The translations under genes were made by a program, and so were the position numbers. The notes under the pieces are model-generated. The model was given only the letters and a program-made list of their open reading frames with translations. It was not told the origin of the DNA and searched no databases. Below, piece by piece: positions 1 to 37,800 of a DNA stretch of 58,111 bases. Location: the NCBI GenBank assembly GCA_000708835.1, contig DF237509.1:1-58111 (forward strand). Direction: 5' to 3'. This DNA is from Klebsormidium nitens (lineage: Eukaryota > Plantae > Klebsormidiophyceae). Position 1 is the stretch's first letter; each line of letters starts with the position of its first letter.

Positions 1-2463
1 ACGGTCTCAGCTGAGCCTACTAGGCTAGAGTGTAGACCTAAAGATAGGCCGTGACTCGGAACACTCCATATACATTGTGTGAACTTGATTGATTGAATAT
101 CACTTCCAACAACGCTGTGTTTCAACACAATCTACTGCAAAGCCTCAAATTTCGCCGGCCTCGAGACTCGTGCGACAAGCCCGTAGATTTCAATTGATAC
201 AAATACTTTGCCAAATTTCTGCGCCGCAGCCTGGTAAATCGCCCGCCCGCGATTTGCACCGTAGCGGTCCCGTGATGCAAAGAACGGGCTTTGAGCAATG
301 TCACCTAGATGTACGAGTCTTTTGAAGTACGGTTGAATAATCCGATTGATCCAACGGTAGACGATCAACTCGACGCAATTGGATTTAGAACATTTAAGAT
401 AAGAATCCGATATAGTCAATGTCGGCCGGCGGCCCGGCACTTTCGATTTCTAGTGATTACGCCACTCGCTTCATTTAGTAATCCAAACCGCAAACCCAAT
501 GCATCAAAATGGTTACAAACTACTGTACAACTTATCCGAATTGAATAAGATATATTAATTATATAATATATGAATTGAATGAATAAGTCGAAGACGGCAT
601 CCAATCAATAAATCCAACACTTTATGATGACCAGAGCCGAGTCTTCCCGGCCCTTCTCTATATTCGAATAGCTTCCCTGTCACCTTTCATGACGTTGTAC
701 CCAACACTGTTGCTTGAACCACAATCAAGAGTTTTGAGTGAACATTCCAGGCTTTGTGCTAAGAATGAGCCTTTGGGCCTCAGAGTCTTAGAATTTGCTT
801 TTCTTGCGTTTGCTTTGGGTGGATTGCATGCTATGCCAAGTAGCTCGGACCTTCTATCTTCAACTCCTTCGCAAGATTGACCGGTTATTCTTATTAGTAA
901 ACCCAGCAAGGCATGCACCGCTACTCTTGCCATCATCAAGTTGGGCCATTTTCACAACTGCCACCGGCCGGCAGGATCTAACTTTGGCTCTTAAACCTCT
1001 CAAAGTCCTTGCATGCCACAACAATGGCTTTGGGCCCTTGGTGGCAAGCTTAACTTCCACTCAGGCTGTCAGATTCTTTTTAGGCCACTGCGTCATGCAT
1101 TCAACATGCTGTTTCTTTTAATGATGGTCCTCAACTTCCGATTTTGCCTACTTGGGATGCACTAACGCGGCCATGCCAGTAGCCCAAATGTTATTGCGGA
1201 TAGAAACTGCACTTCGTCGCGAAGTTTCAAAGATACCAGACCGCCAATGATAAGTTGGAGGTCCGAGCATAAGTTCAAAGGGCCGCCCGAAGTTGAGTCC
1301 TGAGCACAATCTAGCCACCTCTATGACGTGCCTGGGCGTATCGTCCATCAGTGAGATATCGAACAAAAGCCTCAGAGCCGCTGAAGTGGCAGCCGGGTGC
1401 CGCACAAATCGGCTTCTTGTGTGACGAAAGATTTAAGTTTATCCGCAGTGAAGCAAGGTGACGCCGTGTACTCAGCACCGTGGCCGCCTAGAATATGTCG
1501 ACGTGTCCGACCGTAACTTAAACTTCAGTCCGACCCTAGATCTTTGCCGTCACAAGGCCCCGGGCCAAGTCTTGAGTAGAACACTCAGCGGTCATTGTAT
1601 GGCAAGTTAAACTTAGTATGCATGCATGAACTTAGATGTTTTCTGCCATGAATCTAGTGACTCAGCAACCGTGCGTTCTCGGAATTGGGCGCAGTACATA
1701 GCGCTTCGTTTGATTGGCGATCGTCCCGCATGGCCCACCCGCCATGCTTTCTGGCCACACTCTAGCCATTGGCCCCATGCCATACCGTTATGGTGCTAAA
1801 CATTGGCCCAAGTCAAGTTTGGCATTCGGATGCATATATAATATGGGTGATGATCTAGCAAGTCTGCCGGTGAACTTCGGACTCTAGTGACACGTACTAG
1901 CCGCTGCGGCCGCGCCGGGGCCGACTCGATCATGTGTACCAATCAATTGAGCGGAGACCCCAATTCGGATCATCGTGACACTGTGAAAAAGGTGACACTG
2001 ATCAAGTAGGCTTTAAAATGTCACAGGCTGATACGATAATCAGCGTAATTCACAATAATTACGATGTACTAAAGCCTGCTTGAAAGCGGTTGGTGACTAA
2101 CTTTGTCAATCCCGCATGTAAATAGACAAACTTGATCGGTGTAAGTTAAGAAGACTCAGTCTTGGCATCCTTGCATCATCAGAGGCTTGCCATGTGTGCC
2201 TTGACGAAGCTCGAGTCCGTAACCTTCGGGAGGAAAGTATCACGCCAAGCAAGGGGGCTTCAATCGGCTTATGCATACGGGGAGTCGGAATCACGGCATT
2301 GTCGGAAACACACGGCGTGCCGTAGTGATATTGAATGAGCATCGTCATGCCGCAGTTTCCGGCTTCATCCTCTTGATCAAACATTTTTTCTTCCGAAGAA
2401 GTATTTTGAAGTGCGGGCTTAGCCGGGATGGCACCACAGAGTTCCTGCCAACCACTGTTCTTG

Positions 2464-2549
2464 TGTGGCGGCCGCATATATTCAGCCGGCCAACCCACGT
2501 GGCACGCGTGCCACGTGGGTTGGCCGGCTGAATATATGCGGCCGCCACA
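2464..2549. repeat. Perfect 86-bp palindrome (two 43-bp arms, no spacer)
   Basis: Checked base by base: positions i and j pair when i+j=5013, from 2464 to 2549, centred on CACGCGTG. The arms contain GCGGCCGC, GCCGGC and CCACGTGG. Confidence 0.97.
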
Positions 2550-2571
2550 AAAATGGAACGCGTTCCATTTT
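2550..2571. repeat. Perfect 22-bp palindrome abutting the 86-bp palindrome
   Basis: AAAATGGAACGCGTTCCATTTT, also centred on ACGCGT. Confidence 0.95.
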
Positions 2572-3467
2572 CCGAAAGCCCGTGACATGTGTTTTTGACA
2601 TGGGCGACACTATCATATTTTGACACTGTAAGCCCTCGGAAGGACGAGTTCGACATATGCACCATCGTGTGCCACCGGCAAGGGTTGAAGGCTGAATGTA
2701 CGCATGAACCTAGATATCAACCCCGTCGCGTAATATGGCAGTGCATGCATCGTGTTCAGCTACGTGGATAGTATAAGCATGTTCAATCGGTCACCGGGTA
2801 CCGCCAATTGGTGCCAGAGCTATGCCCGCGCGAACGATTTAAATTATAACCCAATTTTATGCTTGACTAGCTTGCTTTCACCACAGTGCGAGACTCAGTC
2901 AGTCATGAGATGATGCTGTTGCGATTTACTTGTCAATCATGTGCCGCAAAAGGGGCTGATCAATCTACATCGTACAAGAATATTTTCGCAAGATTCTCCA
3001 ACCTTCCTATATTCAACGCGTGTGGATGCATAAGTTATAGAACCGATACATCAAGCGATGCAACAATGCATAGGTCAAGCCGTGGCACCAACACGCAAAG
3101 AGATCGTGCTACTTAGATTTGCATTTCGATTGGATGCGAGTGCACTTGAGGTTGCATGCCATCAAGCATTTGACTTCGGGCCGTGAATGAATGTTCAGAC
3201 ACGGACCCCATTTTGATGCAAGGTCAAGGATTTGCACCTTAGTATACCTAGTCCGAAACAATCCTCACTTTTCGACCCTGCATATGGTCTAGGTTTAAGG
3301 CCAACTCAAAACAAGGTGGTCTCAAGTCTGACGGGCAAAGAAGCTGAAAACCGTTATCCTCTGATTGGTCACAAGTTGTGTACACTCTTAGGATACCTTA
3401 TCTCATTTCTAACCACCGGCTGGTGGTGGCAATCCCAATTCTTGGGAGCGTGTCGAATGCAGCTCTT

Positions 3468-6400
3468 CTAATCGGAGCTAGAACACGTGTCGTCAATAGG
3501 GGACTCCGGACAAGGTGGCAGAAGAGCAACACAGTACAGCTTGCTGCTGCTATACTTTTTCACCACCGCAGTCAAGCTGGCCGTTGCAGACTTCCGGTGT
3601 ATTGACGACATTAGGAACGAACAAGACCTGAACAACGATGTTCATGAGTTGTCAAACTCGAAATGGAGGACACCGTAGAACAAGGGCTTCGAGGACAGAT
3701 TCACACATCGGCAAAGGTCGTGAACTTGGAGAGCATCCTCACAGCGCGCGTTCGCCGGCATGCAAAAGCTGTGACCATTTCCCCTAACCCGAACGGTGAA
3801 TACTGTTCCGTGTCCTTTGCACTCTTCTCGATCCATGTGTGCATCTCATGGAGAGAGGCCCCGCATGCAGCCCAAGCAGAGATGACATTGCCGTGCTGCC
3901 GCTCACCTGAGTGCCGTTTCCGAGTACCCTGAGTGTTTGTGGAGCGCTGGCGACCATGGCGTGCGGTTGAGCGTCTTGAGGGCCGTGTGCACAGCCGCGG
4001 CGGCCAGCAGGGAGGGCGTGAAGCGCAAGAAGGCGTACTCGACCAGGCACAGCTCCACCAGGAAGAAGGCCGTCGTCTCCAGCTGCAGCACAGGAGCAGC
4101 AGCGGTCACACACAGCCTCCCCGCGGGGATGCTCCAGCCTGAGCTGACGGTTTGGAAGTCCGTTTCAGGACGGGCTGAATCACGCAAAACGTTCAATACA
4201 AGAGACTTGGCTTCGGATCCACTCCACGTCTGTTTAATAGAGAAGCAAGCCTTGGGGTTGCCAAAGGGATGTCAAATGATACAGCAGGCTCTTTTACTCA
4301 TCGAGCCCAACGAGTTGGACAAGGTCGATACATTTCCACTGATCACATCCTCAGTAGGATTGCAGACAGGATCTTGGGCAACATAACGGGGTCCAGGTTG
4401 TACCTGACCATTGGGGACATGCTACGCTGAGCGCAGACATACAAGTCCGGCCATCCCTTGCACAAGCTAGACACACAGGCACACAAGAGAGTGGGCTGCC
4501 CCTCCTCGTAGCGGCCAGCGTCGTGGGTGCCGGCCGCGCTGGCGGCTGGGCCTCACCTGCTTGTCTGCTGCGGCAGCCTTGAGGTAGCGGCACATGAACA
4601 CGTACGGGGTGGGCACTGTCAGGTTGAACTTGAGCGTGTTGAGCATCAGCTTCTCCTGCAGGACACAAAAGGACCCAATGAGCGAGGCCGCGAGAGCAGG
4701 TGGGTGCGGAGCGACAGCTTGGAGATTGGAGCAGGCGCAACGCAGACAGCGACCCAGCATGAGCCAGCTCGGACAAGGCAGAACAGGTGGCGGTCACTGA
4801 GCGGGGCGCGCTACTGACCATGGCGAGGATCTGGTCCTTGTCGTACGCATTGTCGGAGATGTAGACGAAGTCCTTGACCTCGGGCGCCCAGATCTCCTCG
4901 TACTTGGACGCGATGAGCATGGCGGTGACGCCCACGAGCTGGAGGTGCTTGCGCGTGACGGGGTGCAGCGCCAGGAAGCGGTCGATGAGGTTGGTGGTCA
5001 GGAAGAGCGTCTCGGGGGTGAGCTTGAACTTGAGGTGCACCTCCACGAGCCAGTCCACCAGGATCGCGCGCATCTTGTCGTTGATGTCCGCCTGCCGCCC
5101 CATGTACTGCGGGCTCACGCAGCTCTGCCCCTGCACACGCACCCGCACGCGTCAGCTACGGTCAGCAGGGGCAAAGGTGACAGCACAAAGGGACAGGCAA
5201 AGGCAGGAGGGCGCGCAGGGCGGAACAGTGTGCTGCGCCCAAGGTGCTGAGGGCAGAGAGGCGTACCTCTGTCCGTTTGTAAAAGGCGTAGATGTCCTCG
5301 ACGTACTGCGTGACACACAGCGGGTCCCTCTGGTCTGCGGAGTCAATGTCTGGGAGGGCCTCGTCCGCCTGCACACACAGCGCGCCTGTCAGGGCAGCCT
5401 GAGGAGACACCGGGCTCGTCAGGCAGGGACTCTAGCAGGCAGCTTGCGACGCAGGCTCAGGTTCGAGGATTTGCCAACTCTGTGTGTCAATCTGGAACAG
5501 CTTGCTTTGGTCAGGCCTGCTGCTCACATCCTCCATCTCGGCATCCGCGTTGCCGCTGACGGCCGCACTCTGCGCCAGCAGCTTGCTCGTGGTGCTCTGC
5601 TCATGAGTGCCCAGCTTCTTCTTGCGCAGCACACGCGCCTCCACCTGCTTGGCCATGCGCGCAGCAGCGGCCCCTGGATGCAGCGAGTTGCTATTGATGC
5701 TGGCCAGCGGGTCACGCTCCGACACCCCGCTGCTGCGGCCTGTCCCGCTGGGCGCACCGCCCTCTGGAGCCAGGTCATTGCGGGGCTTGGTGATGAGGTC
5801 GCGACGGCGGTGGGCGCCCCAGTTGCTTGGGAGGGGGGGAGCAGCTGCAGCAGCGGCAGGGGCATCGGAGGCAGCGGCGGCGGCCTGCACACAGACAGGG
5901 AGCATGAGGGACTCCTTGGGTGCTGAGGCTGGAGAAGGAGGAACAGCAAACAAAGCTTCCACGAAAAGATGCAGCTTCCACTTGCAGCGCTAGAGTTTGG
6001 CCTGCCACTGTGTGCTGTATTAAGGGCATGGTGTAGGGAAGGCCCAACTTACAGATTTGGCTGCTAGCCTGGTGGTTGGCTTGTCGTTGACAGCTCCCAG
6101 CCCACGTCTGCACACCCAGAAGGCACAGGGTTAGGTGCGGCGGCACACCAGCAACAGACAAGTTGGTAGGGTTAATGGTAGATGTACAAGTGCACTTTTC
6201 AGACCAACAACTCCAGAGATTGAGGATGAGAAGAGAGCGCTCACTTGTAGGCAGCTCTTTCCGCCAAGGCTCCCTGCTTCTGACTTCCTCCTCCAGCATT
6301 GCTGCAAGCCAAGGTTGAAATAATGAGGTTGCATACCTTGCTCTGACATCCTCTCTTTTTTCTTGGAGAAATCCCTGACAAATAATGTCTAGCGCGAGCA

Positions 6401-8410: not shown

Positions 8411-11400
8411 ATGGGGGACTACATGCGCAGGGACATGGGTGGACGCCCTAGCAGCCGGGCAAATGTCCAACAGCTGAAACTGGTATGTAGTCCTTCTGGT
8501 CATTGATGCGAGATTGTTAGTGGATGCAGGGCGGTCTTCCCCTTCTGCTCATGATGTTTGCGCAGTTGGAGACCTCTGCAGCATCTACAGCTCTGACCCT
8601 GCTCAACTCTAATGATGTCACCCATTCTTCTCATAGATCGGGCAGAGTCATCCTACGGGCCTCACTCCATCCCTGCTGCGCCTTTTCGAGCCGCGCTCTC
8701 CCGTCGATTATAAGCCGCCGGTGGAAAAGAGGAAGCTGCCCCCACTTTCAGGTCAGGAATAGTCCCGTGTTTGCAGACCGAAGATAAGTGATGCTTTGAT
8801 TACACCATTACCACTTTTCCAGGCACATGTTCTGTTCTGCGTCTCTTAAAAGCTGGTTGCTTCTTGCATTTGCGGATCAGAGGTGCAGGGCCGGAGAGTT
8901 GTTGTGTTCAGCGGACGCTTTTCAATTGGAATTGCAGGAGTTGCCCAGTTTGTGGGTCAATTTGCTGAGCCAGGGGATCCAGAGTACGAGCCGCCTGTAA
9001 CAAAAGGAGAAACAAAGGTAAGAGCATCTTCTAAATTCTATTAAGTGCGCCCCTGCGCATTCAATGCCTTTTGTGCCATCATATGCTGTCTCCATGGTGC
9101 TTGTTGCGAATTCGCTGCGCGACGATACATGCTCTGTCGAGTGCAGTTTGTTGTTCATCCCATGTAGCCCGCGCGGTGCTCCTCAGCTTGCTTGATGTGC
9201 TGCTTGGTTGACCAAGTATCTCCGCCTCCAGATTCAAAAAAAGGAGCGAATTCGCGCAGCCAAGTTGGAGGTTGGGGCTGCGAAGTTGGAGGAGGCGCTG
9301 ACACTGTGTAGGTTTTCTGTGCTCCTACCCGGTGGTTTGTATGGGAGCTCCTCTGTCTGTTGGCCACTGCGGCAGCATGCCCTGCCACTGCCTGAGCGCT
9401 GTGCTGCGGGAAGATGTTTGACGGTGATGGGGCTGCTGCTGACCGGAACTATTGTGCGTGCAGATGATCCAGCAAAAGATCCAAAGGTTGACGGGGACCC
9501 CTACAAGACACTTTTTGTGTCCAGAATTGTGAGCCCGTCGTTCCCGTCATTCAATGTTACTTTGTTTTAACATGATTGGCACTGGGCAAGAGTTTGATGT
9601 TATTTTGATGTCCTTCCTTCAAAAACTTCTTCGTCTTGTCCTTTTGTAGCTTGTGGAATGATTATGAGCTCGGTGATTACCCGTCCTGTGTGGTGTTCTT
9701 CATGCAGAGTTATGAGACTACCGAGCATCGAATCAGGCGTGAATTTGAGGCATATGGCCCTATAAAGAAGGTAAGAATCAGTAAGTACATGCTCGATGTA
9801 GTACGGCAAAGCCTTCAGGCACTTGATTGCAATCGTCAATCCTTTTGGAAAGGGCGTTGCTTTGCTGACCTGCTGTCGTCATGGTTCGTCAGGATTTCCC
9901 CTTCAACTAGACTAAGGCCGGGCCAGTGACGGGTTTTTGCTGTAGTTGGATTGCTGGTTGTGTGATTTCGCTGCTGCCACTGTTGCTCTGTGCACCGTCT
10001 CTGGGGTCACCGTCTTTGGTAAACTGGTTTTGCCCTGGGTAAGTGGTAAGGGGCAGAGTATAGGCTCGAGTACGGCGCTACAGGGCTGGGCTCTCGTGAT
10101 CTCTTGGCGCTTTGCGCGGCCAGTTGTGGGTGCCTCTGGACGGCTGCGCTGATTTGTCCAGGTGAGCACGGCGCTTGCCGTGCCCATTGCTCCGCGGTCC
10201 CCTCACCCTCGTGGTTGCCAACATGACTTCCGCGTGTCTCCTCCGGCGCACGTCCTGCCCCTGGCGCTCCGTTTGCGCCTGCTCATTGTCTGTGGCCTTC
10301 AGCCTCGCTTGCTACTGTTTCTCTGTGGATTGACACTCAGGCGCTTGCTGCAGATTCGGCTCGTCAATGAGGAAGGAACGGGGAAGCCACGTGGATATGC
10401 TTTTGTTGAGTTCCAGCACACTCGGGATATGAAGGGTGAGTTCTCCAATGTGTTTCTTGGTCTCCTCGGTTGCGCTCCCCTTGCTCTTAGCAGGAAGTCT
10501 TGTCGTTTCAATTGCTGCCATGGCGGTGCCTGGATCTCAGCAGCCACCCTCCCTCTTGGGTTGAGCAGTGGCATGCCTTGTGTGTGCAGCTGCGTACAAG
10601 CAGGCGGACGGTCGCAAGGTAGACGGCCGCCGCATAGTGGTGGACGTGGAGCGCGGCCGCACTGTGCCGGGCTGGCGCCCGCGCCGCCTGGGGGGTGGCC
10701 TCGGTTCCACCAGGATTGGGGCCGACCAGGTGAACCAGGTGAGGAGCCACGCGCAAGCACACACTTGCTGGGCAGCGCCTTGCTTGAGGTGGCCCTCCTG
10801 ATGGACTCCCCGCCCCAGCGACTGCTGCCAGAGGGGAGTAAGGGCAAGGACGCGCACTGAATATCTGCGGTACGCTGAGGGCTTGCTTGGGCCCTGTTTG
10901 TGCGTGCAGCGTCACAGCGGGCGGGACCCTGCGGGTGGAGGGGCTTCTGCCATGGAGGAGGAGGCTCCGCGTGTCAGGGACCGTGACCGTGATCGGGACA
11001 GGGAGCGCGAGCGGGAGCGGGAGCGGCCAGAGCGAACAGACAGGTAACAGCTAGCTGGGGATCAGTGAGGGTTGACAGGCTTCCTGCGTGGTGCTTCGAA
11101 ATCATGCTCGTTCCTCGCAACCTGGCAGGCCTTTCATTTATTAATTGATCAGAACTTAGTTTCGGGTGGTCGGGGCCCCCTAAAGAAGATTGACAAGCAT
11201 TGCCCTTCAAACTTGGAAAAACGCAGGCCAGGAACGTCTTTTCACTTTGATTCCGCTGTTGGAATGATCATCACCTGTATTCAAGACGATTATTGCAAAT
11301 TCTTCTCAGCTTTTCCGGGCAGGGTGGCAAAGCCCTTCTCGTTTTAGGACATAGTCACTGCTGCCACACACTTCACATCTTCTAGTGTTGTCCTTATGAT

Positions 11401-11786
11401 CTACAACCACTTTTGTCTACATACCCATATCCTGTGCAGAGAGCTGACCTAGATGTTAACTTCTACTTTTTTGACTGTGAGAACTTCTAATCTGCTTTAC
11501 CCTTTTGAACAAGTTTCTCTTGCGAGGACATTCTGATACCAGCTTGCACTGGTTATGTTGTTGCAGGGACAAAGACCGGGTGCGGGAAAGGGATCGCGAT
11601 CGAGATCGTGGAGGAGAACGGTCCGTGGAGCGAAGCGGAGAGCGGTTTCGGGACCGTGAACGACCTCGAGAGCGTGAACGTGAGAGGGGGGGCCGAGAGC
11701 GCGAGCGAGAAAGGGAGCGAGAGCGCGACACGGATGTCAAGTTTGATGATCATGGTAGGTCTCGGGATAGAGAGCGTGATAGATGA
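8411..11786 (+). CDS. SNRNP70: U1 snRNP 70 kDa protein
   Basis: Exons 8411-8482 (MGD...RANVQQLKL), 8637-8751 ([20 protein letters not shown]), 8938-9017, 9232-9307, 9464-9528 ([12 protein letters not shown]), 9708-9770, 10354-10435 (RNP1 [10 protein letters not shown]), 10590-10738 ([22 protein letters not shown]), 10909-11043 and 11567-11786 (RD/RE-rich tail). Phases are consistent. Confidence 0.95.
9946..10045 (+). other. Candidate alternative (poison-type) exon inside U1-70K intron 6
   Basis: Acceptor TTTTTGCTGTAG ends at 9945. Donor-like sites G|GTAAAC (10019), GG|GTAAGT (10039) and TG|GTAAGG (10046). Confidence 0.5.
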
Positions 11787-12984
11787 TTGCATAGCAACAG
11801 TGGGCACATTGTCTGGGCTAATCATGCGACAAGTTGGCAGCTACAAGAGACCACTAGGTTACTAGCATCATTGATCAAAGGATACCTAGGCTCCACTTGT
11901 CCACAAGTACTCCGTCAATGGATGACCATACATTCGTTTTGCTCATTGCACATATATCTGTGAGTAGTATTGGATGGTGGTTGGAAGCACTTTTGCTTGA
12001 ACGTTTGAGTTGGAATGCGGTCTTTCATTTGTCTTGTTCGCCCCTTGGTTTTAATTCTGCATTTAAATGGTTGTAATTGGTGAGAAGTCATATAAGTACT
12101 TTGAAAAGTGGCAACGATTTGTCGCCTATATGTTTGTTTACCCCGATAAGGATGTGAAGCCAAGTTAGCTAACTTGACCCTTTAGGACTTGATTCATTGC
12201 AAGGATATAATGTGTTCTTCGTACGTACTTTGTGCAATTGCAAGCATGCTACTACGCGTATAGGGCGCATGCGGAGGAGCCAAAGGAATGGGCCACCAAA
12301 GCTGCCAGCCAAAGGTTCCTGTGGCGCGGTAGGAAAGTCTTGAGCCAGGCTATTGTCGCGAGGAAGGAGGCCCCTAAGAGTCTACCTATATGTCCAGTAG
12401 CTCAAGCAGCGTTTTCTGCCAGGGCTACCACTTCTTTTCCCATTTTCGCACCTGCATCGAATTACTTGAATCTTATATACTTTCTGCACGCCTTGACATT
12501 GATGATTGGACAATAGGTACGATATATTCATAGGGATATCCTGACTGACATAACCCGAGAACGATACTGGCCACTTGTGGCGGCTGGGCCCCTGGGAATG
12601 ACATCAGACTACCAATGTACCATACGGTAGTAGGCAATGCAATGGGCATGATTGCGAGATCGATAGCATGGGCTATTTTAGTATTAGGGTTAGGTCCCAG
12701 GGGATGACTGAGGCGGCCTACCTGAGGTCATTAGGGTATATTAGGCACCGCGCACCGGGTCTACTACAGGGCGGTACCCGAGGTCCTGCAATTCGTCCGT
12801 CGATTTGCAATTCGACGGCTGACATCTCTGACCAGGCGACGTCATTCAACCGCTATTAATAGTTTGAAACTCATCTTGACGCACACCTCAACAACTTTGA
12901 ATTATGACGATCGATCATCGCGGGAAGCAAGAGTGGGCCTGATGCAAACCGTCGATCTTTTGTTCCGCAATAATCGGGCACGTT

Positions 12985-18613: not shown

Positions 18614-21600
18614 TCACAAGAGCTGGTCCACTGCCAGCTGCAACTCGGGCCGGGCTTTGGCCGCTGCCTCCACGTCAGCAGCTGAGGCCACCGTCACGAT
18701 GTGCGCGCCCTCTCCGCGCACCGCCTCCAGAACGTCCGCAAAGTTCGCAAAGTCCTTCTCGCTGCACCCAACGTAAGGACCACCGTCAAAATTTGGTGAT
18801 GCTTGCGACATCATCTGAGTATTGAACCGAAGGAGTCAGCAGGGCGATCGCAACGAGTTCAAGCCCAATGCATTCACCAGCTGCGCTCTTCTCTCCAAAG
18901 GAGCGGTGGGAGGCCCTTCTTCTTGACTTAGCGCACCAGTAGAAACACCGACGCTCGAGGGTGCTCGAGACCTCGCACCACCGGGTGAGCTCTACCTGCG
19001 AGCTCCCGGGCGTGATTAAGGCGGCGCGCGCGTGGCAGCTGCGGGTCTTACCTGGTGGCGAGCACCTCTTCGCGGCGCTGCTGGCGCTCCTCGTCGGAGA
19101 CGCGCAGCAGGTGGCGCATGAGCGCGGTGTAGCCCTTGGCGTCCGGCAGCTGGTACGCGTCGATGTCGCCGATGGTCCCAATGATGGCCTTGCTCAGCGC
19201 GTCGCCCTCCAGGCGCAGGCTGCGCAGGAACGCGGGCGTGCCGTCGTATGTGTCCAGCGTCTTCACCAGGTTGGGGTCGCGGTACGACAAATACGTGAAC
19301 ATGCCTGCACGCCACGCCACTCAGAGCCGCTCAGCATGCTGCCCGCTCGCCTGCCCGCAGGAGACCGATCGAAACAGCAGCCTGCCACAGCCGGTGGGAA
19401 AGGCGGCGAAGCGACGGGCGAGGCAGCGGGCTTGCGCAGAGTGGGGAGAAGACCACGGCCAGGAAGCGGACCAGGGCGATGCTCACCGCTGTGCGAGTCA
19501 AAGTCGCAGAAGCCCCCATAGGCGCCGCCGCTCACGCGGACGCGGTCCCAGAGCCACGTGTTGCCGATGTGCTTGGAGATGACGTAGGCGCTCCCGCTCA
19601 GCTGGTAGCCGGCCGCGTACAGGTTGGCGCCCTTGCCCACATAGTTCACCTGCGCGGCACCGCACCCTCGCGGCGTCACTGCCAGTGCTCACTGCGACTA
19701 CTGCGACTGGCGCCACCCGGCTGTCTCTATGCCGGCATCCACGAGGAGATCCCGCAAGCATCGGTCGAACTGGGTGCCTAGCACGTTACTCTGAACGGAG
19801 GCCCGATGCAGATCACGTCAGAGCGCTAAAAAGGGTTCAAACAAGGGTCACACTAAGATTTCAATAAGGAGAGAGTACGAAGCCGACCTTGGAAACCCGT
19901 TATTGCCGCCGTGCAATGGCCGGATGCTGTTAGTGACTCCCTTTTTACGCACGGAATTTTGCGCGGATTCAGAAGTTTTCTTCCTGGCTTCAGTGGTCTT
20001 CGCATGCTCAGAATCTGGGGTTTGCCAGCTTGAACGACGTGGCAAACGCTGGTATCTTCATTGCTGCAAGACGACAGATCTTGCTACAAGATGTGTCGTC
20101 TTGAGCGGCGGCCCTGTCCGCCTGCTGTCCGCCCTGCTCTTTGTGGGTGCGCGCTCACCTGTGTGGGCACCACCAGCGCCTCGTTCCCCGCGCTCAGCCG
20201 CTCCGTCCACTCATGGCGCGGCCCCCCCTGCTGCGGCAGCGCGGCGAGGAAGTCGGCGACGGGCCCGTCTGCCGCGTGCAGCGTCTTGTCGTCGGCGGTC
20301 AAGTTCAGGATGGCCCCCTCCTGCGACAGCAGGCTCCGCCGGATGTCCTCCAGCTGGCCGCGCACCGCGTCCCACTCGCTGTCCACGCGCGCCTCCAGGT
20401 CCCGCAGGAAGCGCAGGTACGACGCGCCGCCCATCACCTCCGCGACCCAGCCCGCGGCGCTGTCCTTGGCGTCGATGCGCGTCGCCGCCAGGCTGTGGCC
20501 GCCGCCCACCACGCGCGCCTCCATGCGCGCCTTGGCCTGGCTCACGAACTGCTTGAAGCGCGCGCGATCGTCGAAGACCACGTCGTGCAGCAGCGTGCGC
20601 ATGAGCCCCAGCAGGTCGCCCGCCTGCCCCGCCATGCCCTTGCCCTTCACCACGAACGCGCTCACCGGCTCGCCGCTGCCGCGCCGGCTGCTGGTGAACG
20701 GGTACGCGCTGATGCCGCCCGTCTTGCGCCCGATCAGCTGGTTCAGCTGTACGAAGTCCATGTCGGCCGTGCCCCCCTCCAGCAGCGCCTGGCTGAAGAG
20801 CGGCACCAGCGGCAGCAGCCCCGCCGGCACGCGCCGCAGGTCCAGCACCGCCTCCGCGTACAGCACCTCGTTCGTGAACAGCTCGTGCCGCAGCACCGTG
20901 GCGCCGCCGCGCGCCTCCACCGCGCTGGGGATGGTGGCGGCGGTGCGCGGGATATCGGCCAGGTCCAGCGCGGGGATGGTGGCCAGCGCGGCCGGCAGGT
21001 CGGGCGTCTCCTGCCGCTCGCGCAGAGCTTGCGTGGCCTCGATAAGAGCGGTCACGTCGTCCTCGCGCAGCGCCGCCTTGGCCGCCGCCAGCCGTTCACG
21101 CTCCGCCGCCTCAGTGGCCTCCCCGAGGGCAGGGTCCGGCTGCAAGGGCGGAAGGTACGGGATCAGCCCTTGCGCATGCGGCCATAAGCAGTCGACAGAT
21201 TAGCAGATCTCCAGGTCGATCGGACATGCATCGGATCATACACAGACCGCCGAAGCGGGGGTCGTCGAACAAAAGTGCTTAAGTTGCATGAAGGCGAGGC
21301 GCAGGGCCTGCCCCGCCTGCGGCCGTCTCTCCGTGATGCCTGACCTGGAGCTCGAGGGTGACGCGGTGCGGGTTGTCGAGGAGGTAGCGCCGGATGAGCG
21401 GGCCGAAGAGCGCCTTGCTGCCCTGCTGCTGCAAGCGCGCCTTGAAGTGCTCCAGCGGGGCCGCAAAGCGCAGCGGCTCGAAGGGGCTGCGGTCGTAGAG
21501 CCACTTGCCGACGCTGCGCAGCATGAGCGCGAGGCCGCGCGGGAAGCTGCCCGTGTTGTTCTCGCGCAGGCTGAACTCGATCGTGTTGATGCTCGCCTCC

Positions 21601-24245
21601 ACCGCCTCCGCGCTGAACCCGCTCTCGGCCAGGCTCTCCAGCGTGGACAGCACCAGGCCCTCCACCGCGCCCGCGTTCTCCGCAGCCACGCCCTGCAAGC
21701 GCACCGCAAGTCGGGCGTCACACGGCGACCCACAAGCCGCCCTTTCAACAGCTTCATTCACTTGATTAGATCACGCATGAATTAGCCTACGGCATTGGAT
21801 GAGCTGCCCACAGGAGGCAGCGTTGCTGAGCGTGATGCCAGCTGGCGCGTGCGTTACCTTGAGGCCGATGCTGAAGGCGGGCTGGCGCAGGTCGTCGTCG
21901 ATGCCCCCCCCAATGATGGCCTCGCCCAGGCCGCTCTCCATGAGCGCCTTGCGCAGCGGCGCGGCGGGCGTGCCCAGCATCAAATGGTCCAAAAAGCCCA
22001 GCGCCAGCTCCGTCTCCACGTCCAGCACGTCCTCTGCACCAAAACAGGCGCGCCACCCTCAGCGACGGCAGCCACGATGACACGCACCGGGCAGGATCAC
22101 TCTCGCACCATTTCCAAGGCACCTGGCTCCAGCCGGCAGCCGTAAAGACTCTTCCCACAAACAACCTCTGAGGTGCCGACTTCTGGGACAGCAGCCGAAA
22201 GCCAACGGCACAACGGCAGTGCACCAGTTAAGCAGAGTGTTATGCCACTATGGAGCAGCTGAAAGCGGCCACAAGTCCACACATGCTGGAGCAGGCCTGG
22301 ATGCGATGCCTGACCTGCAAGGAGCCAGTTGACGGCGACCATGTTCTTGGCCTGCGACGCGTCTCCCCCGGCCGCGTACTTGTGCACTGCCTTCTTGGGC
22401 TCGGAGAAGAGCGGCTGGATGGCCACCTCCGACTCGTGCACTGCCTCGTTGCGCTCAAACTCGCTCAAATACTCTGGCAGCCGCAATACAGACAGCCAGT
22501 CAATCCGCGGCGAAATTCGGCAAGAAAGATCAATAGACAAACAGGCGCACGGAATGTTGGCGTACTTCTCAAAGCTGGTCTCAAGAAGTCTGCCTACAGC
22601 CTGTCGTTGTGGGGTCTCAGCAAGAAACACACAGCTTGTGTTCGGCCTGGGGAATACTCACTGTCCAGGATCTCGAGGCGCTTATCAAGCGGATCGTCGC
22701 CATAGAACCAGATGCGCGCGTTGCTAGGGTGATAGAACTTGCGGTGGAAGTCCTGGAACTCGGCGAAGGTGAGGTCCGGGATGACGGACGGGTCGCCGCC
22801 ACTGTCCACGCCGTACGTGTTGTCCGGGAAAAGGTTCTGCTGCGTGTAGCGCGCGAGCATGCTGTCTGGCTGGCTGTACACGCCCTTCATCTCGTTGAAC
22901 ACCACACCTGGCCACACGGCGACACGCGCAAAGAGTCAGCCGCAGACTCCAATTGGTGGGTACAACATGATGCAGGGACTGGAACCAAGTCTTGAGAGGC
23001 AAACTTCCAAGAAGCAAGAAACAAAGTTTGCCAGGAATCTGTCTCGAGATCCTCGCCAGAGCTCGAAGCGATGAATCGCCTTCCTTTGCAGGTGCCCAAT
23101 CAACAACTCAAGGAACAGCAAACTGAATGATGACAATGTTCAAGAGATGGAATGAATCAAAGTGCCATGGCAGACATTGAAGAACGCATTCTGGGTGTGT
23201 GCGGTGTACCCTTGAAGGTGATGTCATCGTCGGGCTTGTCCAGCTCATAGTGCCAGCCCTCCTGCTGGAAGGTCTGCTCGTCGCGCACGCAGTTGGGGAA
23301 CAGCACCGCGTCCAGGTACACGTCCACCAGGTTGTAAAAGTCCTGCGCGCACACAGGACCGCTCACACTGCTCAGCCAGTATACTCAGTTGACTGTCGTG
23401 TCTGGCAACACGAAATAACGGCTTCATGCGGGCCAGATCTAGGCGGTGGCACAAAAAGTGGCAAGGTTGAACAATGGGCGCCAAAAGTGTTGCTTGATGG
23501 CCGACTTCTTCTGGCAACTTCGTAGGGAGCGGAGGCTGACCTGGAGGTTGGTGGAGGCGACGGGGTAGCAGGTGCGGTCGGGGTAGGTGAACGCATTGAG
23601 GAAGGTGTTGAGGCTGCCCTTCATGAGCTCCACGAACGGCTCCTTGAGCGGGTACTTGCGGCTGCCGCACAGCACGCTGTGCTCCAAGATGTGCGGGATG
23701 CCTGTGCTGTTCTGCGGGGGTGTGCGCAGCACGATGCCAAACACCTTGTTCTCGTCATCGCTTGCCACCGACATCAACTCCGCTCCCGTCTTGTTGTGTT
23801 GGTACAGCACCGCATGCGCATTGTACTCAGCAATGTACTCCCCTTCCACTTCTGTAAAGCCGTACTTCTGCACTGCCTCCGAGGACGCCTTTCGCAGCGA
23901 CGGCCGCTCCGGGGCCGCCACCACAGCCCGTGCGGCGCCTGCCGCGCCGCTGAGGCGCCGCTGCGGGCCAGCATTGCCTGACAGCTGGCATGCAGCGGCA
24001 AAGCCGAGGCTGGGGTGCAACAGCGGGCGGGCGCCACTTGGGCGCAAGCCCGAGTACCCTGGCAGGCCCTGCCGCGGAGCACCCTGCCGCGCAGATGCTG
24101 CTGCGCTGCCTCGTGTGACGCCTCTCAAGGCGGCAACAGGTGTCGCGCTGCTAGCCCATCTCTGGCCCACTCGTGCCAGGAGGCGGCCAGCCCCGCTTGC
24201 GGGCGTCATGCAGGCAGGGCGGCACGCAGCCTGGACACCTGACAT
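18614..24245 (-). CDS. PREP: Presequence protease (M16C pitrilysin-family metallopeptidase) with N-terminal transit peptide
   Basis: Inverted zinc motif HILEH in NSTGIPHILEHSVLCGSRKYPLKEPF; also GVVFNEMKG and WLWDRVRVSGGAYGG. Ten exons: 24245-23541, 23342-23210, 22907-22662, 22473-22315, 22033-21858, 21692-21345, 21139-20159, 19649-19487, 19304-19052, 18761-18614. Confidence 0.96.
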
Positions 24246-31839: not shown

Positions 31840-34800
31840 ATGAAGGGCGGAGAGCAGGTGGCCAGCGTGCTGCGCAAGAGGTGAGCGCTCCCGCAGGGGT
31901 GCCTAGCCCCGGCATGCCCCCGGATTGCCTTATAGCCCCTCCTCAACAAAGAGAACTACACTACAGGGTGTACTCCTTTAGCCTGACCCACACTTTGTGG
32001 CGTGCACTGATATCCAGCCAGCCACGTCACCTTGCTGGTATCACAGCAGAGCCATGGGGAGCTTTCCACTCATGAATAGCTCTTCGATCTTGAACAGCTT
32101 CTGGTAAACGGATCAGCGTCGTGCATAGGTTGCAACACAATGCAATGGGCCGTGCGTATCGATGCCCTGCCCAGCTGTGCTGTCTGTGCCCCTGGCTTGC
32201 CCGCCATGCCTGCTGTGTACGGTGCAGGCCCGAGTTGCGCAGCGCCAAGGAGGTGGCCCTGGTGCACGCGGCGCTGCAGCCGCTGTCCTTCTACCAGCGC
32301 CTGCACCCCGACCCCACCGCCTGCGGGCCCGCACAGGCGCACCTCTGCCGCGCAGCGCTGCTCAGGGAACTGGAGCAAGAGGACACACGTGAGGGCGTGC
32401 AGGCCCAGTGGGGCAAGCCTTTGGGCCATGGCAGTTTGACTACACCCGCTTCTATCCTGAGTCTTTGCAGATTCGATCAGAGAGGATCACAGGGCCAGGC
32501 GGATACGGTCTGTGTAGGCACTCTTTATGCTGGTAATCTGCATATTGGCCATGTTGCAGCTGGTCTAGATCGACGTGGCCGCAAGAACAATCCAGAGTTT
32601 GCAGTGGAAGGACCCCTTCAGGGCGGCCCTCAGCCAAGGCTGTATCCAGTTCTGACAGTAGTGAGAGCGCGTGATCTTCCGCCATGCTAGACTCGTCCTT
32701 ATTACCGGTCTCCCGCTGCGTGTGCGTGTTATCTGACTGGCTTCTGTGGCTGTGGTCAGTGCACGAGGAGGGTTCCCCCGGCGTAGGCTTCTGCCTGATC
32801 CTGTCTGGGTCCCTGTCCGAGTACAAGCGCCAGTATGCCGCGCAGACCGGGGCCGGCCGCTACCTGCACAAGCTGGGGCCAGGCAGGGGCTTTGGGGAGG
32901 AGGCGCTCACACAGGCCCAGCCCAGGTAAGGCGCAGCAATTCAATCAGAGCTGGCCGCCGCGCTCAAGATAGCCCATTCGAGCATTGAGGCATGGGTAAT
33001 ACCTCGAAGCTGGCACCCATTGCGTGCTTTGTCTGCCATGTCATGGCTGTGTCAGCAGCCTCCTGTGCGTTCCCCTTGCTGACGTCTTGAGCCCCGTGCG
33101 CTTCTCAGGCTGCGCTCATCCACGCTGGTGGCGGCGGAGCCGAGCGAGCTGCTGCTGCTGCGGCGCGAGGACTACGTGGCCATGACGGCCATGGCGCAGC
33201 AGGCCCTGGCCGTCAGGTCAGCGCCACACCCACGCCCGCCCCGCCAGCTGACGGCCCCAGCTGGTACTGCCTGCACGTTTGTTGCTACACTGCGTCAACG
33301 TCGATTTGCTCTTGAAGTCGAACAATTCAGGTATGCCCTCCTTAGATAGCTTGCGCTGACAATTCCCGACACTGCCTCAGCCGGCAGCCTATGTCCGCTT
33401 CTCGTCTACCCCGTCCTTTTTCTCACCATCCTCCCGTTGCTGTGCCCAGCCCCGCCCTGCGCAGTGAGGACGACCTGCTGTGCCTGTTTGCGCTGGCGGC
33501 CACGCTGCTCTTCTTCCGCCCCGTCCCCCCCCGACCCTCCTGCAGCTGGCCCGTGCCCTGGAGCCGGCTTCCGCTGCACCGGCCCAGGCCGTCGTGGTGC
33601 AAGGCCAGCCCGGGGGGGCATTGTACGTGGTGCTGCACGGCAGCGTGGCCCCCCACCAGAGGCGGCGGGAGAGCTTGGGGAGTGTAACGGAATGGAGGAT
33701 GCAGGCCGGGGAGGCGGGACCCCCGGTGGGCGATGTGCTGCAAGCGGGGGACGCATTTGGCGAGGAGGCGCTGCTGCACGCAGACGGGTGAGGGGGGCAG
33801 GTTGTGACTTTCGGCACACCTGGAGACCAGACGGGACTTGAGGACGATAGCAGCTCAGATCTCAAGTCTTGACAGCTGGCAGGCCCCATGTTCGATAGCA
33901 CAGCTTGAGGCAGTTGGCCGTGCTTGGAGGTTGAAACCATGCAGAGGCAGGGAGCGGTGCGGACCCGACCTTCTTCACGGGGCCTCATCTGCTTGAGTTG
34001 ACCGATTCGAACGCAACACTTTGTTCTGTCTTCAACCAGCTGCGGCGCTTGACCGCCCCTTCCCTTGTGCGCCCAGGTGTTATTCGAGCACGTACGTGGC
34101 CGTGGAGGCGTGCCAGCTGGTGGCCATTCCGCGCGCCGCCTTCGACCGCGTGCTGCGCGGCTTGGGCTGCCACCTCCAGTACCAGCCAGGGCAGGTGCGC
34201 CGCACGCTCGCGCAGGCCCCGCGCAGGAGGACCTCCGCCGCAGTGCAAGGCCTTGCCACGCAGGTCAGCGGAATAAAGCGGCCGGAATTTTCACCCGTCG
34301 CTATACAGTCACTCCTTTTCTATGGGACCAGCTCAGAAAGCACGGTATGTCACGAGACGGGGCTCTCTCAACTACTAGCATTTCACATCTACAGAGCAAT
34401 AGTCCATGCGCTGCTCCATTATCTGACTATTTCTCACGAATACAATTCTTAAGACACCCCAACCTAAGTGCACAATAACCAAACGGTGGCATCCCGTTGC
34501 GTTTCTCAGATGCACGGCCTGGCCTTCTTCTCGTCCTTCTCCCCCGAGAGCGTGCGCCACCTCGCTGCGGGCTGCACGCTCGCGCACACGTACGCTGGGG
34601 ACCGCGGTGAGAGGCACATCCCCCCCTGCAGGGCCACACATTGCGAGTGTGTATGCTTGCCGGATCACGTTAGGCAATTGACAAATAAATGGTGCAGCGC
34701 GTCCGTGTAAGCTGCCGCTCATTGCTTCGCCCCTCGTCGTGCGTTTCCGATGGGAGAAACTGTGTCCAGCTGATCGAAACGCGACATTGATCTTCTTAAG

Positions 34801-37800
34801 CACGACATTGATCCTCTTCGTGTCCTTGCACCTTCTGTCGCGACCTCCGGAAGGCCCCACTTACCCCTGCCACGTGGCGCTCCCTGCTGCAGTGTTCGAC
34901 CAGGGCTCCGTCTCGAGCGCCTTCTACGTGCTCCTTTCCGGCGCGTGCTCCATCTACGTGCGCGACCACGACCCCGCACACCCCACCTCCGCGCGCACTT
35001 CTGAGGCTCCGCCCGCCAATTCGCTGGCCCGCCCCGGCTACGTCAGCTCTCCCGGGCTGCCCGGAAGCCCCGCAGGCGCACCTCCCGAGCGGACGCTGTT
35101 CTCCGACTCCACTCGGCGAGGCACCCGCACCACGGGCTCGAGCGGCAGCGACCTCCCGGACATGCACGCCGCCAGCCAGGCCAGTTCGGCCGTGGGGCCT
35201 CTCCCCTCGGTGCCCCTCACCGTGCAGCTCGTGGAGCCCACAGAGCGCGGGCCACGCCGGGGGGGCGGCCGCTTCGTGACCAGCAATAACGCCAGCCTGC
35301 CGTCGCCGCGCGCGTCATCCCCCTCCCGCCGGTCCCGCTTCGCCACGCAGGCCTCCGCCGTAACGGTCAGCGCGAACCAGTTGCCGACCGAAGTGTTCGT
35401 CTCTTTCTGCGCCGACCCCACATCGCCGCGCGGGGGCCTGAACCGGGTGCTTTTGGACCCCCTGGAGCGGCCGGACCCTGGCAGCTGCCCCGTATCCCCG
35501 CGAGCTACCTTGTTGCCGCCGGCTCTCGACGACCTCTCTTCGCTGCCTCGCGACACGCCGCGCCGCCGGATGGTGGCCGCGCCGTTCGTGCCCCCGCCCT
35601 GGCCCGAGGAGCCCGCCTCCGGTCGCGGCGGGGGCGGCTCGACAACTGCGCTGTCGCGGAGTCCTACCGTGAAAGGGAGCCGCTCCCAGAGTGTCACCAC
35701 AGGCACGTGCCCCTCTCGCCCCACGTCCGCCAAGGGATCCCCCCGGGGCGGTGGGCCCCGCGGCCTGTCCGACGAGGACTTCGGCAAGCTGGTGAGCTCG
35801 TTCCGGGGGGGCGCCAAGGTCGCGCCGGACCCCAGCAAGGGCGCGGGGGGGAAGGAGGCGCTACCGGCGCTCCGTAGTCGGCCCCGCGAGCAGAAAGGGG
35901 GAAGCGGGCCGGCCGAGCACGCGGATGGCGCCAAGCTGGGCGCAGGCACCTCGGGGGCGAGGCCGTGGAGAGGCTTCCTGCTTAGCGGAGGGGATGCTGA
36001 CGTGGACCCAGCAGGAGAAGCGAAAAAGAAGTACGGTCGCCTGGTGCGCACGTGTGTGGAGGGGGACGCTTTCGGCGAGCTAGAACTGCTGGGACCAGAG
36101 CCGCAGCTCAGGTGAGCAGTGGTCCACGTGCTCGGAGTATGGTCCGCGCGAGGGAAAGCGAGTGTCGGCTGTCGTAATTGGAAGCAAACGTCTAGTTGGA
36201 AGTCTGAGGCGAATTGACCGGCTAGATGGCTCCGTCGACCATGCACTGAAGGTTGCTCTTGCCCTCTCGTGCCCATCATGCAGCTTCTGGAGTACTGCGC
36301 TTTCAATACCGAGCACCTCAACCAGGAGTATCAAGCCCATGCATTTCCTCGCCTTCTGAAGCCACAGAAAGTTTCGAAGAGAGAGGACATGAAGGGATCT
36401 CCAACTTTCTGGCTGACCTTGGGCGTGGCTGCCCCGTCGCGGTGCAGGGCTGCCACGGTGGTGGCGACGGCGGCCAGCGAGCTGCTGGTCATCCCGCTGG
36501 ACGACTACCGCCGCCACATCCAGGTCAGCCCGCGCGCAAAATCCGGGGCAAGGTCCCGCCGGATGACAAACTCTGACGTTGAGCTGTGGGGAGTTATCGA
36601 AGTGTCGTATCAAACGAACACTTTGCCGAATCCAATCGCCTTTGGTCCGTTAGATACGAAGCGGACAGATTGGTGGCTCCGGGCTAGCAGGCGTCTCGCG
36701 CTGTTAGGATCAAGGAGTAGCAACCAGAGAAATGTACTATTTGCATGATAGGTGGCAGAAGCAAGATTCTTCTTCAATTGCATTCATCTTCATGAGCTGG
36801 ACTGCAGGACAAAGGGGATTGATGGCATGTTCACTGACTGGTCTCCGGTATAGCGGCAGACTTCCCTTCACATACACTCGAATCGTTGGGCAGAAGTTAC
36901 AAGAAAGTTGAGCACGCATGGTCGTTCCATTTTTTTCCTCCTTCAGCACCGGTTCTTCGTTGTTCTCACGGGAAAACCCTTTTCTCTACATTCAAGGAAT
37001 TCGCCACTGTAAGACGTCGATCTTTTGCATCATCTGAAAGGGACGGGTATCCGACCTCTGTGCCCCGCCGAATGTCCCAGATTGGTCTCTATATGAAGTT
37101 TTATTAAGCTCAACTATGACAAGGACGGATGAAGTTACCAAGCGCATTGAGGGTGGGCACGGCTGCGGAGCAGGCAAAATTTTGCGTTCATGTAATTAGT
37201 ATTATCTCGAGTCATATTGTAGCTTAAGCTTGTTATAAGTTTCGTCCAGAGCGCTGACCCGTTCCTTCGCCTCTCCCCTCAGCCCGCCCACGCTCGCCAG
37301 CTGGCTGCCCACTGCGACTTCTTGTCGTGCGTGCCGCTGTTCCGCGGCCTGCCCCCCGCCGCCCTGCGCGGGCTGGTGTACCGCCTGCGGCCGCGCGAGG
37401 TGACGGCCAAAGGCGCGCCGCTGCTGGAGCAGGGCCGCCCCGCGGACGGGCTGTACGTCGTGCACCGCGGGGACTGCGTCATCCGCGTGACGCCGCCAAA
37501 AGAGGCAAGCACCCGCAGTTGACGTCTCCTGGTCGAGACAGTGTAACAAATTGCTTGCTATTAACTGAACAAGAATCTGATTGCACAAGAAGCAGCCTCC
37601 AAAAGGGGTTTGGCCGTGACCCTACGCACATCCGTTGCGCTTTGAGGTTTGGTGCGCTGACCGTTGTAAAAGGCGTTTGTTCTGTACTGTTCAGCAACAG
37701 GTGAAACTACTCCACCCGCACTGTAAGAAGTGACGTGAACTTATGTTTGCGCCCCATTGCACCGCCCTTCAACCTCTTGAGTACGAAGGCCCATAGCCGC

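Follow-up and report, generated by a model that had tools for sequence, protein, structure and literature searches.

Why does the sixth intron of an algal U1-70K gene hold several sequences that look like 5′ splice sites, and are any of them used? The question is raised by contig DF237509.1 of Klebsormidium nitens (GCA_000708835.1), a stretch of 58,111 nt called the window below. An initial annotation had placed there a gene for U1-70K, a protein component of U1 snRNP (small nuclear ribonucleoprotein). It had also proposed that the intron dividing the RNA recognition motif (RRM) carries a cassette like that of vertebrates, with one cryptic 3′ splice site followed by three clustered 5′ splice sites, which would sense U1 snRNP and route transcripts to nonsense-mediated decay (NMD). 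Control of U1-70K dosage by unproductive splicing is already known in Arabidopsis and in vertebrates, and for plants no paper that we searched names the sequences that do the sensing. We report here that intron 6 is indeed spliced unproductively in the alga, by retention and through a donor that had not been annotated. This donor (E2) and an unused look-alike upstream of it (E1) recur in the same intron of land plants.

Splice Forms of Intron 6

Transcripts were represented by assembled Logan contigs labelled "RNA?", from four runs in four studies, which we aligned to positions 9150–10950. Being contigs rather than raw reads, they drop rare variants, and their depth is a poor measure. All four runs behaved as RNA, with GT..AG joints at every intron, and these joints confirmed the junctions 9307>9464, 9528>9708, 9770>10354, 10435>10590 and 10738>10910. 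Introns 4, 5, 7 and 8 were not covered by a contig in any run, which excludes DNA contamination, while intron 6 was covered in all four. It is the only one of the five introns lying fully within the examined stretch that persists in the RNA assemblies, a selective retention in RNA-type contigs of the kind known for the sixth intron of plant U1-70K.

Exactly two joints were found for intron 6. The constitutive one, 9770>10354, was assembled in every run; the other, 10161>10354 (GT..AG), appeared in runs X2 and X7 with contig depths of 97 and 115, compared with 368 and 360 for the constitutive joint. Genome-colinear contigs cover either 9741–10161 or 9741–10381. Those that enter from exon 6 stop exactly at 10161 in X2, X7 and X11, and in X1 a contig spans the entire intron. 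The RNA therefore takes three forms: the productive form, a form spliced at E2 that keeps 391 nt of intron 6, and a form that retains the whole intron. The retained 5′ part makes up a sizeable minority of the RNA, at a contig depth of 60–275 against 100–423 for the constitutive joint, figures that are only rough. Both unproductive products carry the in-frame TGA at 9927, and since translation would stop after 52 codons, ahead of most of the RRM, neither can make functional U1-70K. The initial annotation was right to see intron 6 as a site of unproductive alternative splicing.

The host gene was identified exon by exon. The translations of exons 6 and 7, each taken alone, match Pfam RRM_1, and in Protein Data Bank chains they match human U1-70K residues 111–131 and 133–158, respectively; a search with exon 8 retrieved plant U1-70K proteins. 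These comparisons all used single exons, with no spliced model, full-length search, fold or family scan, and the outer exons were read from the sequence only. Judged by these matches, the gene at 8411–11787 is the U1-70K ortholog, and both its identity and the division of its RRM by an intron were annotated correctly. Intron 6 lies between ...YGPIKK and IRLV..., opens with the authentic donor AAG/GTAAGA (the slash marks the splice point) and is the longest in the gene, about three times the size of the others (154–214 nt). The stop codon that it introduces falls at different places in relatives, after 4 to 99 codons, so the peptide encoded by the intron is not conserved.

The intron is also modestly enriched in motifs resembling 5′ splice sites, although the tests were made post hoc. 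It holds four GTAAG, where the rate across the window predicts 0.26 (P ~1.6e-4), and only 0.8% of 583-nt windows contain, as it does, at least three sites with at least seven of nine matches to CAG/GTAAGT. Two of the 12 GTAAGT in the whole window fall within it. As a whole, the intron folds no more stably than shuffled sequence (z = +1.56), and for this reason only local hairpins were considered.

Conservation of E1 and E2

A search with exon 8 led to short open reading frames (P0002 and P0003) on genomic Logan contigs of two close relatives, L001 and L002. Their exons are 78–86% identical to the window, compared with 27–44% for most of intron 6. Among the three algae, identity is 83–87% at 10032–10054 (E1, kept in both relatives), 71–85% at 10086–10157 and 83–90% at 10158–10186, the last of which includes E2. 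On this alignment, all three stretches, those of E1 and E2 included, are as conserved as the exons (Table 1).

Scanning metagenomes with exon 8 yielded 80 loci. In five of them (L004, L007, L008, L009 and L015), exons 5–8 are split as in the window, with a long intron of 909–1341 nt at the same codon boundary; the introns flanking intron 6 in these metagenome loci measure 78–250 nt. At the land-plant boundary, GPIK followed by K or R precedes a phase 0 intron and I or V follows it; GPIKR is found in L004, L008, L009, L015 and the almond locus (Prunus dulcis AP019303.1, L083), and L007 has GPIKQ. Intron 6 ranges from 909 to 1479 nt in genomic land-plant loci and reaches 1734 nt in L012.

Six of these introns (L004, L007, L008, L009, L012 and L015) hold CCCTGGTAAGGGG, the land-plant form of E1, and in all but L015 the E2 sequence GGTGAGCACGGC follows 108–124 nt downstream. 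The E1 form is exact in these six, in L006 and in almond. The E2 12-mer is exact in ten loci including almond, and L012 and L014 read GGTTAGCACGGC. The almond intron, 1479 nt long, has three copies of E1 and one exact E2. Because an exact 12-mer recurs in the same intron, order and spacing, the likeness is not due to chance. The distance from E1 to E2 is 108–126 nt overall (123 nt in the window, 109 nt in almond), and E2 stands 165–319 nt from the 3′ splice site in all loci (192 nt in the window, 193 nt in almond, roughly 180–320 nt in the metagenome land-plant loci).

One of these loci documents the RNA itself. L012 (positions 626–2359 for the intron) is an RNA-type contig in which exons 5–6 and 7–8 are already joined and only intron 6 remains; it is independent evidence of selective intron-6 retention in another organism. 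In L015, the 909-nt intron (2666–3574) has an intact E1, and E2 has decayed to TTGGACACAAC, which lacks a GT. The locus is Arabidopsis-like, as the exons of L015 appear to translate exactly to the U1-70K of Arabidopsis thaliana. Loss of E2 at this locus could explain why only full retention has been reported for Arabidopsis.

Several further observations were made at these loci. L014, a genomic contig related to L012, still has intron 7. In L007, L008, L009 and L083, two or three copies of the E1 motif CCCTGGTAAGG are scattered across several hundred bases upstream of E2, which is present once. The deposited almond model BBH07913.1 (P0011; L083, 3001–6568), named "U1 small nuclear ribonucleoprotein-70K", begins with residues derived from intron 6 and enters the true reading frame at VRLV; this start is probably an artifact of annotation that retained-intron transcripts brought about.

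Both elements are predicted to form hairpins. In E1, a GGUAA(G) loop would be closed by CCC(U)/GGGG; the algal loop has 13 nt and the land-plant loop 5 nt, and the CCC/GGG stem is retained despite this change in size. The pair outside the stem varies among loci (G-C, C-G, U-A and A-U). In E2, positions +5 to +11 of the donor form the 5′ arm (10166–10172) of a predicted 7-bp stem with 10177–10183, GCACGGC/GCCGUGC, which overlaps the used donor. The algal loop of E2 has 4 nt; the land-plant loop has about 25 nt and holds a hairpin of its own that we did not count, as two alternative registers are possible. Predicted folding energies for E2 range from −13 to −21 kcal/mol. Across 11 loci, 97% of cells in the E2 stem are paired and six pairs are invariant; one pair changes from GC to GU three times, and another shows a double change from GC to UA in L012 and L014. 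The pattern is consistent with a hairpin and thin as covariation. A covariance model of E2 matched only the sites from which it was built and L009 in 351 kb, making it specific without adding new members.

The intron was also scanned for other kinds of element. Rfam models searched against 9650–10450 on both strands returned nothing beyond a chance match (E = 1.8), even with the threshold set permissively. A box C/D small nucleolar RNA in the block at 10086–10157 was considered and rejected, as L001 does not preserve the box-like strings. We likewise rejected the idea that E1 and E2 are duplicated exon borders: no repeat connects either one to the border of exon 6, and the GTAAGT at 9781 is the only possible copy. 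A scan for bacterial-type promoters and terminators found nothing and is irrelevant here. Where the window has that GTAAGT, land plants have GGTAAGA at +34 to +50. Specifically, GGTAAGA lies 34 nt past the authentic donor in L007, L008, L009 and L083, with GGTGAGA at +50 in L004 and GGTAAGG at +49 in L012.

The Annotated Cassette

All motifs of the annotated cassette lie where they had been placed, including the AG at 9944–9945 and the GTAAGT at 9781. The three donors read TTG/GTAAAC (10019), TGG/GTAAGT (10039) and GTG/GTAAGG (10046). The frame arithmetic is also correct, as exons of 73 and 100 nt shift the frame and run into a stop soon in exon 7, and the 93-nt version stays open for 31 codons. 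The predicted use of these sites fared less well. The junctions that had been proposed as a check, 9770>9946 and 10018/10038/10045>10354, are missing among the contigs of the four runs, in which no joint falls at 9946, 10019, 10039 or 10046 and colinear contigs read straight through. Since contigs drop rare variants, this is a lack of support and not proof of absence.

Comparison with the related algae separates the motifs further. The internal acceptor expected to start an exon at 9946 is joined in none of the runs, and its AG is absent from both relatives. Only part of the donor cluster is conserved: 10039, the core of E1, is kept in both relatives and in land plants, 10019 is matched in just one relative, and 10046 is found in neither. 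A vertebrate-like architecture finds no support, as the contigs show no joint to an alternative 3′ splice site, none is conserved, and the one conserved donor, 10039, shows no use. The donor that is used, at 10162, lies 123 nt beyond 10039 and had not been listed. In short, the motifs are real and enriched, and they do not work as the initial annotation described.

It could still be that the cassette is real and rare, with an exon from 9946 to 10018, 10038 or 10045 whose frameshifted forms are lost to NMD and missed by assembly. The motifs exist, a frameshift would follow from two of the three exon sizes, and rare variants are dropped from contigs; human exon 7a itself becomes visible only after NMD is blocked (PMC3798272). 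Yet no such joint appears in four runs, neither the AG at 9944–9945 nor donor 10046 is present in either relative, and no AG upstream of E1 is conserved among the land-plant loci. Moreover, the observed forms need no cassette to be unproductive, because the stop at 9927 precedes 9946. We consider this explanation highly improbable.

Table 1. Features of the U1-70K locus in the window, with the main grounds for each
Feature	Position	Strand	Grounds or remarks
U1-70K (SNRNP70 ortholog) coding region	8411–11787	+	Exons read from sequence, exon matches, contig joints
U1-70K exons 1–5	8411–8482, 8637–8751, 8938–9017, 9232–9307, 9464–9528	+	
U1-70K exons 6–10	9708–9770, 10354–10435, 10590–10738, 10910–11043, 11567–11787	+	
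Intron 6	9771–10353	+	Phase 0, 583 nt, sixth intron; constitutive joint in 4/4 RNA runs
Second GTAAGT, 10 nt past the authentic donor	9781–9786	+	Kept in L001; GGAAGG in L002
First in-frame stop (TGA) if intron 6 or its 5′ part stays	9927–9929	+	Translation; 52 intron codons precede
Annotated cryptic acceptor AG	9944–9945	+	Present; no joint in contigs; absent from L001 and L002
Annotated three-donor cluster	10019–10051	+	GT at 10019, 10039 and 10046; only 10039 (E1 core) conserved
E1: GCCCU-GGGUAAGUGGUAA-GGGGC, with GGUAAG (GT at 10039) in the predicted loop of a short CCC(U)/GGGG hairpin	10032–10054	+	Conservation, folds
Block between E1 and E2	10086–10157	+	Conserved only within the Klebsormidium-like group; no alignment with land plants
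E2: CAG/GUGAGC, alternative 5′ splice site (GT at 10162)	10159–10183	+	Joint 10161>10354, contig ends, conservation, covariance model
Sub-intron removed with E2 as donor	10162–10353	+	192 nt, the size of an ordinary intron of the U1-70K gene

Elsewhere in the window, G+C content reaches 67–69% at 20001–22000 and 34001–36000, compared with about 55% in the rest, and long open reading frames overlap on both strands in these two regions, as is typical of GC-rich sequence.

Proposed Mechanism and Alternatives

We think it reasonably probable that intron 6 corresponds to the sixth intron of land-plant U1-70K, which is regulated, and that E1 and E2 serve as decoys that set the balance between productive and unproductive RNA. 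E1 would be a 5′ splice-site look-alike in a hairpin loop and E2 a real site partly buried in a GC-rich hairpin, so that both may offer U1 snRNP low-affinity or partly masked sites. When U1 snRNP is abundant, E1 and E2 would be occupied; either E2, the donor closer to the acceptor, would then win, or the intron would be held unspliced, and less U1-70K would be made, closing a negative loop. When U1 snRNP is scarce, only the authentic donor, which is open and strong, would be bound, and splicing would be productive. We infer the binding of U1, which way the feedback runs and what becomes of the unproductive RNAs; the abundance of these RNAs would suggest that they are held in the nucleus rather than rapidly degraded by NMD. 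The switch that senses U1, as proposed in the initial annotation, finds a partial footing here, as conserved elements resembling 5′ splice sites and common to land plants fit such a switch, and the vertebrate-style mechanism is unsupported.

The elements might instead be hairpins that bind protein and do not pair with U1 snRNA, with bound U1-70K or an SR-type factor blocking removal of the intron. Both fold into conserved predicted hairpins whose stems are kept as loop sizes change, and their 12 to 13 invariant bases exceed by far what a 5′ splice site needs. A version in which free U1-70K binds its own pre-mRNA directly draws on the stem sequence AGCACGG of E2, a string similar to the loop AUCACGAAG in stem-loop I of U1, and U1A, which autoregulates through a mimic of its own snRNA site, sets a precedent. 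However, the CACG stretch of E2 falls in the predicted stem and not in a loop. In both elements, the sequence around the GU also fits a 5′ splice site well, E2 is actually spliced, and in plants the isoform is altered by knock-down of U1-C and not only of U1-70K (PMC11489095), all of which leaves this explanation rather unlikely. A plainer view, which we regard as improbable, is that a long intron with competing sites is merely slow to be removed, the retained forms being by-products and the elements serving a role at the level of DNA or of a small RNA. Intron 6 is the longest in the gene and, as noted above, its overall fold is unremarkable. This view does not accommodate the order of the elements, their spacing and their distance from the acceptor, which are kept from alga to angiosperm, nor the use of E2 as a splice donor. 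Rfam gives no match on either strand and the box C/D reading fails, and published plant genetics show that the isoform ratio responds to snRNP supply (PMC11489095; bioRxiv 10.1101/2022.06.14.496170).

Several points count against the proposal that E1 and E2 are decoys for U1 snRNP. If L015 is Arabidopsis-like, E2 cannot be essential for retention, because this locus lacks E2 and the literature reports that its intron is still retained. Most of the land-plant loci are metagenome contigs, almond being the only named genome. Because the stem of E2 hardly varies, pairing is supported mainly by conservation, and a single compensatory change is seen in one lineage. As for the RNA, isoform shares from assembled contigs are rough, such contigs could miss minor junctions, and only two of the four runs yielded the E2 joint. 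Finally, the step from U1 snRNP level to splice choice in the alga is drawn from sequence and literature.

What these observations add is a pair of candidates. With two short elements invariant from alga to almond, one of them a used donor, a "retained intron" becomes a hypothesis that can be tested by mutation, and the plant sixth-intron event is extended to streptophyte algae. Our literature search found no report of a U1-70K intron event in algae and no description of the conserved intron elements, which are also missing from Rfam; the claim that the arrangement was undescribed holds for the E1/E2 pair in the papers searched.

Comparison with Known Systems

The closest known system is the sixth intron of plant U1-70K. 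Arabidopsis, rice and maize make a non-functional isoform that retains it (PMC545797, PMC2277414), a finding that the passages on this event in PMC545797, PMC2277414 and PMC11489095 credit to Golovkin and Reddy 1996. In Arabidopsis, the retained isoform falls when U1-C is knocked down (PMC11489095), and picln and gemin2, two mutants in snRNP assembly, make more of the functional isoform (bioRxiv 10.1101/2022.06.14.496170). The algal event shares with this system the gene, the boundary after GPIK and K or R, the sixth position, the unusual length of the intron, its partial retention, the in-frame stop that truncates the RRM, and the presence of E1 and E2. It differs in that the algal intron is 583 nt long, compared with 0.9–1.7 kb, and in that the alga uses the defined donor E2 besides full retention.

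Elements that resemble splice sites without serving as such are known from other genes. An ultraconserved pseudo-5′ splice site in ENOX1/Enox is an unspliced intronic copy; bound by U1 snRNP, it makes productive splicing of the neighboring exon less frequent (PMC13100119). E1 is similar in being conserved and unused, since no junction in the contigs of the four runs uses its donor at 10039; ENOX1 differs in gene and kingdom, and its element is a single 9-nt motif with no hairpin. A further parallel is the U11 snRNP-binding splicing enhancer (USSE) of the U11-48K and U11/U12-65K genes. These genes carry conserved tandem sites, reportedly described by Verbeeren et al. in 2010, to which their own snRNP binds, so that splicing is redirected into an unproductive form. 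Conserved between animals and plants, the USSE consists of U12-type sites a few bases apart and activates an upstream 3′ splice site. Like the algal locus, it places elements resembling 5′ splice sites in the gene of an snRNP protein, although snRNP binding is putative in the alga; E1 and E2 differ in being U1-type, about 110–125 nt apart and each associated with a predicted hairpin. An allusion to the USSE appears in work on human SNRNP70 (PMC3798272).

In human cells, splicing of SNRNP70 is driven to an unproductive form when U1 snRNP binds cryptic 5′ splice sites within intron 7 (Rösel-Hillgärtner et al. 2013, PMC3798272), and an alternative acceptor is reported at +642 of that intron (PMC3798272). 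The algal and vertebrate systems agree in producing an unproductive form of U1-70K within the part that encodes the RRM and in having intronic sequences similar to 5′ splice sites; the vertebrate switch was proposed to sense intact U1 snRNP. They differ in that the alga shows an alternative 5′ splice site and retention, with no alternative 3′ site or cassette seen, and has two spaced elements borne on predicted hairpins rather than three adjacent sites.

The introns themselves are also probably not the same, contrary to the initial annotation. Intron 6 of the alga maps between human residues 131 and 132; PMC3798272 gives no protein position for human intron 7. A metazoan-like, non-vertebrate locus (L040, WLWD01001985.1), with two peptides 86% and 94% identical to human, has a plain intron of 72 nt at GPIKR. 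Its next intron (2394–3997), after ...EKERDMH, is 1604 nt long and contains three GTAAGT within 31 nt (+745, +766 and +776), near the position of the +642 alternative acceptor in human intron 7, and further on, at +1340 and +1345, a doublet of GTAAGG and GTAAGT. This resembles the arrangement around vertebrate exon 7a, set in the intron beside the plant one. L029, L056 and L075 likewise have a long or retained intron at this second position, between the equivalents of exons 7 and 8. Among these, L056 (425–1128) and L075 (507–1478) are RNA-type U1-70K contigs of other eukaryotes that keep an AT-rich intron of 700–970 nt with five or six strong motifs resembling 5′ splice sites. In the window, intron 7 (10436–10589), which corresponds to the apparent regulated position in animals, has an ordinary length of 154 nt and shows neither contig coverage nor decoy motifs.

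Because the long, motif-rich intron of L040 is the next one, the likeness to vertebrates is more plausibly convergent than inherited. Judging from the metazoan-like L040, it is likely that the animal switch lies one intron downstream and resembles that of plants by convergence. We would go further only tentatively, at somewhat less than even confidence: E1 and E2 may be an ancient two-hairpin sensor of U1, kept since before Klebsormidium-like algae and land plants split and forming the core of U1 homeostasis in streptophytes, with animals having built an analog in the neighboring RRM intron. If so, plants and animals would have placed similar decoy-site sensors in different introns of the same domain, a case of convergent design.

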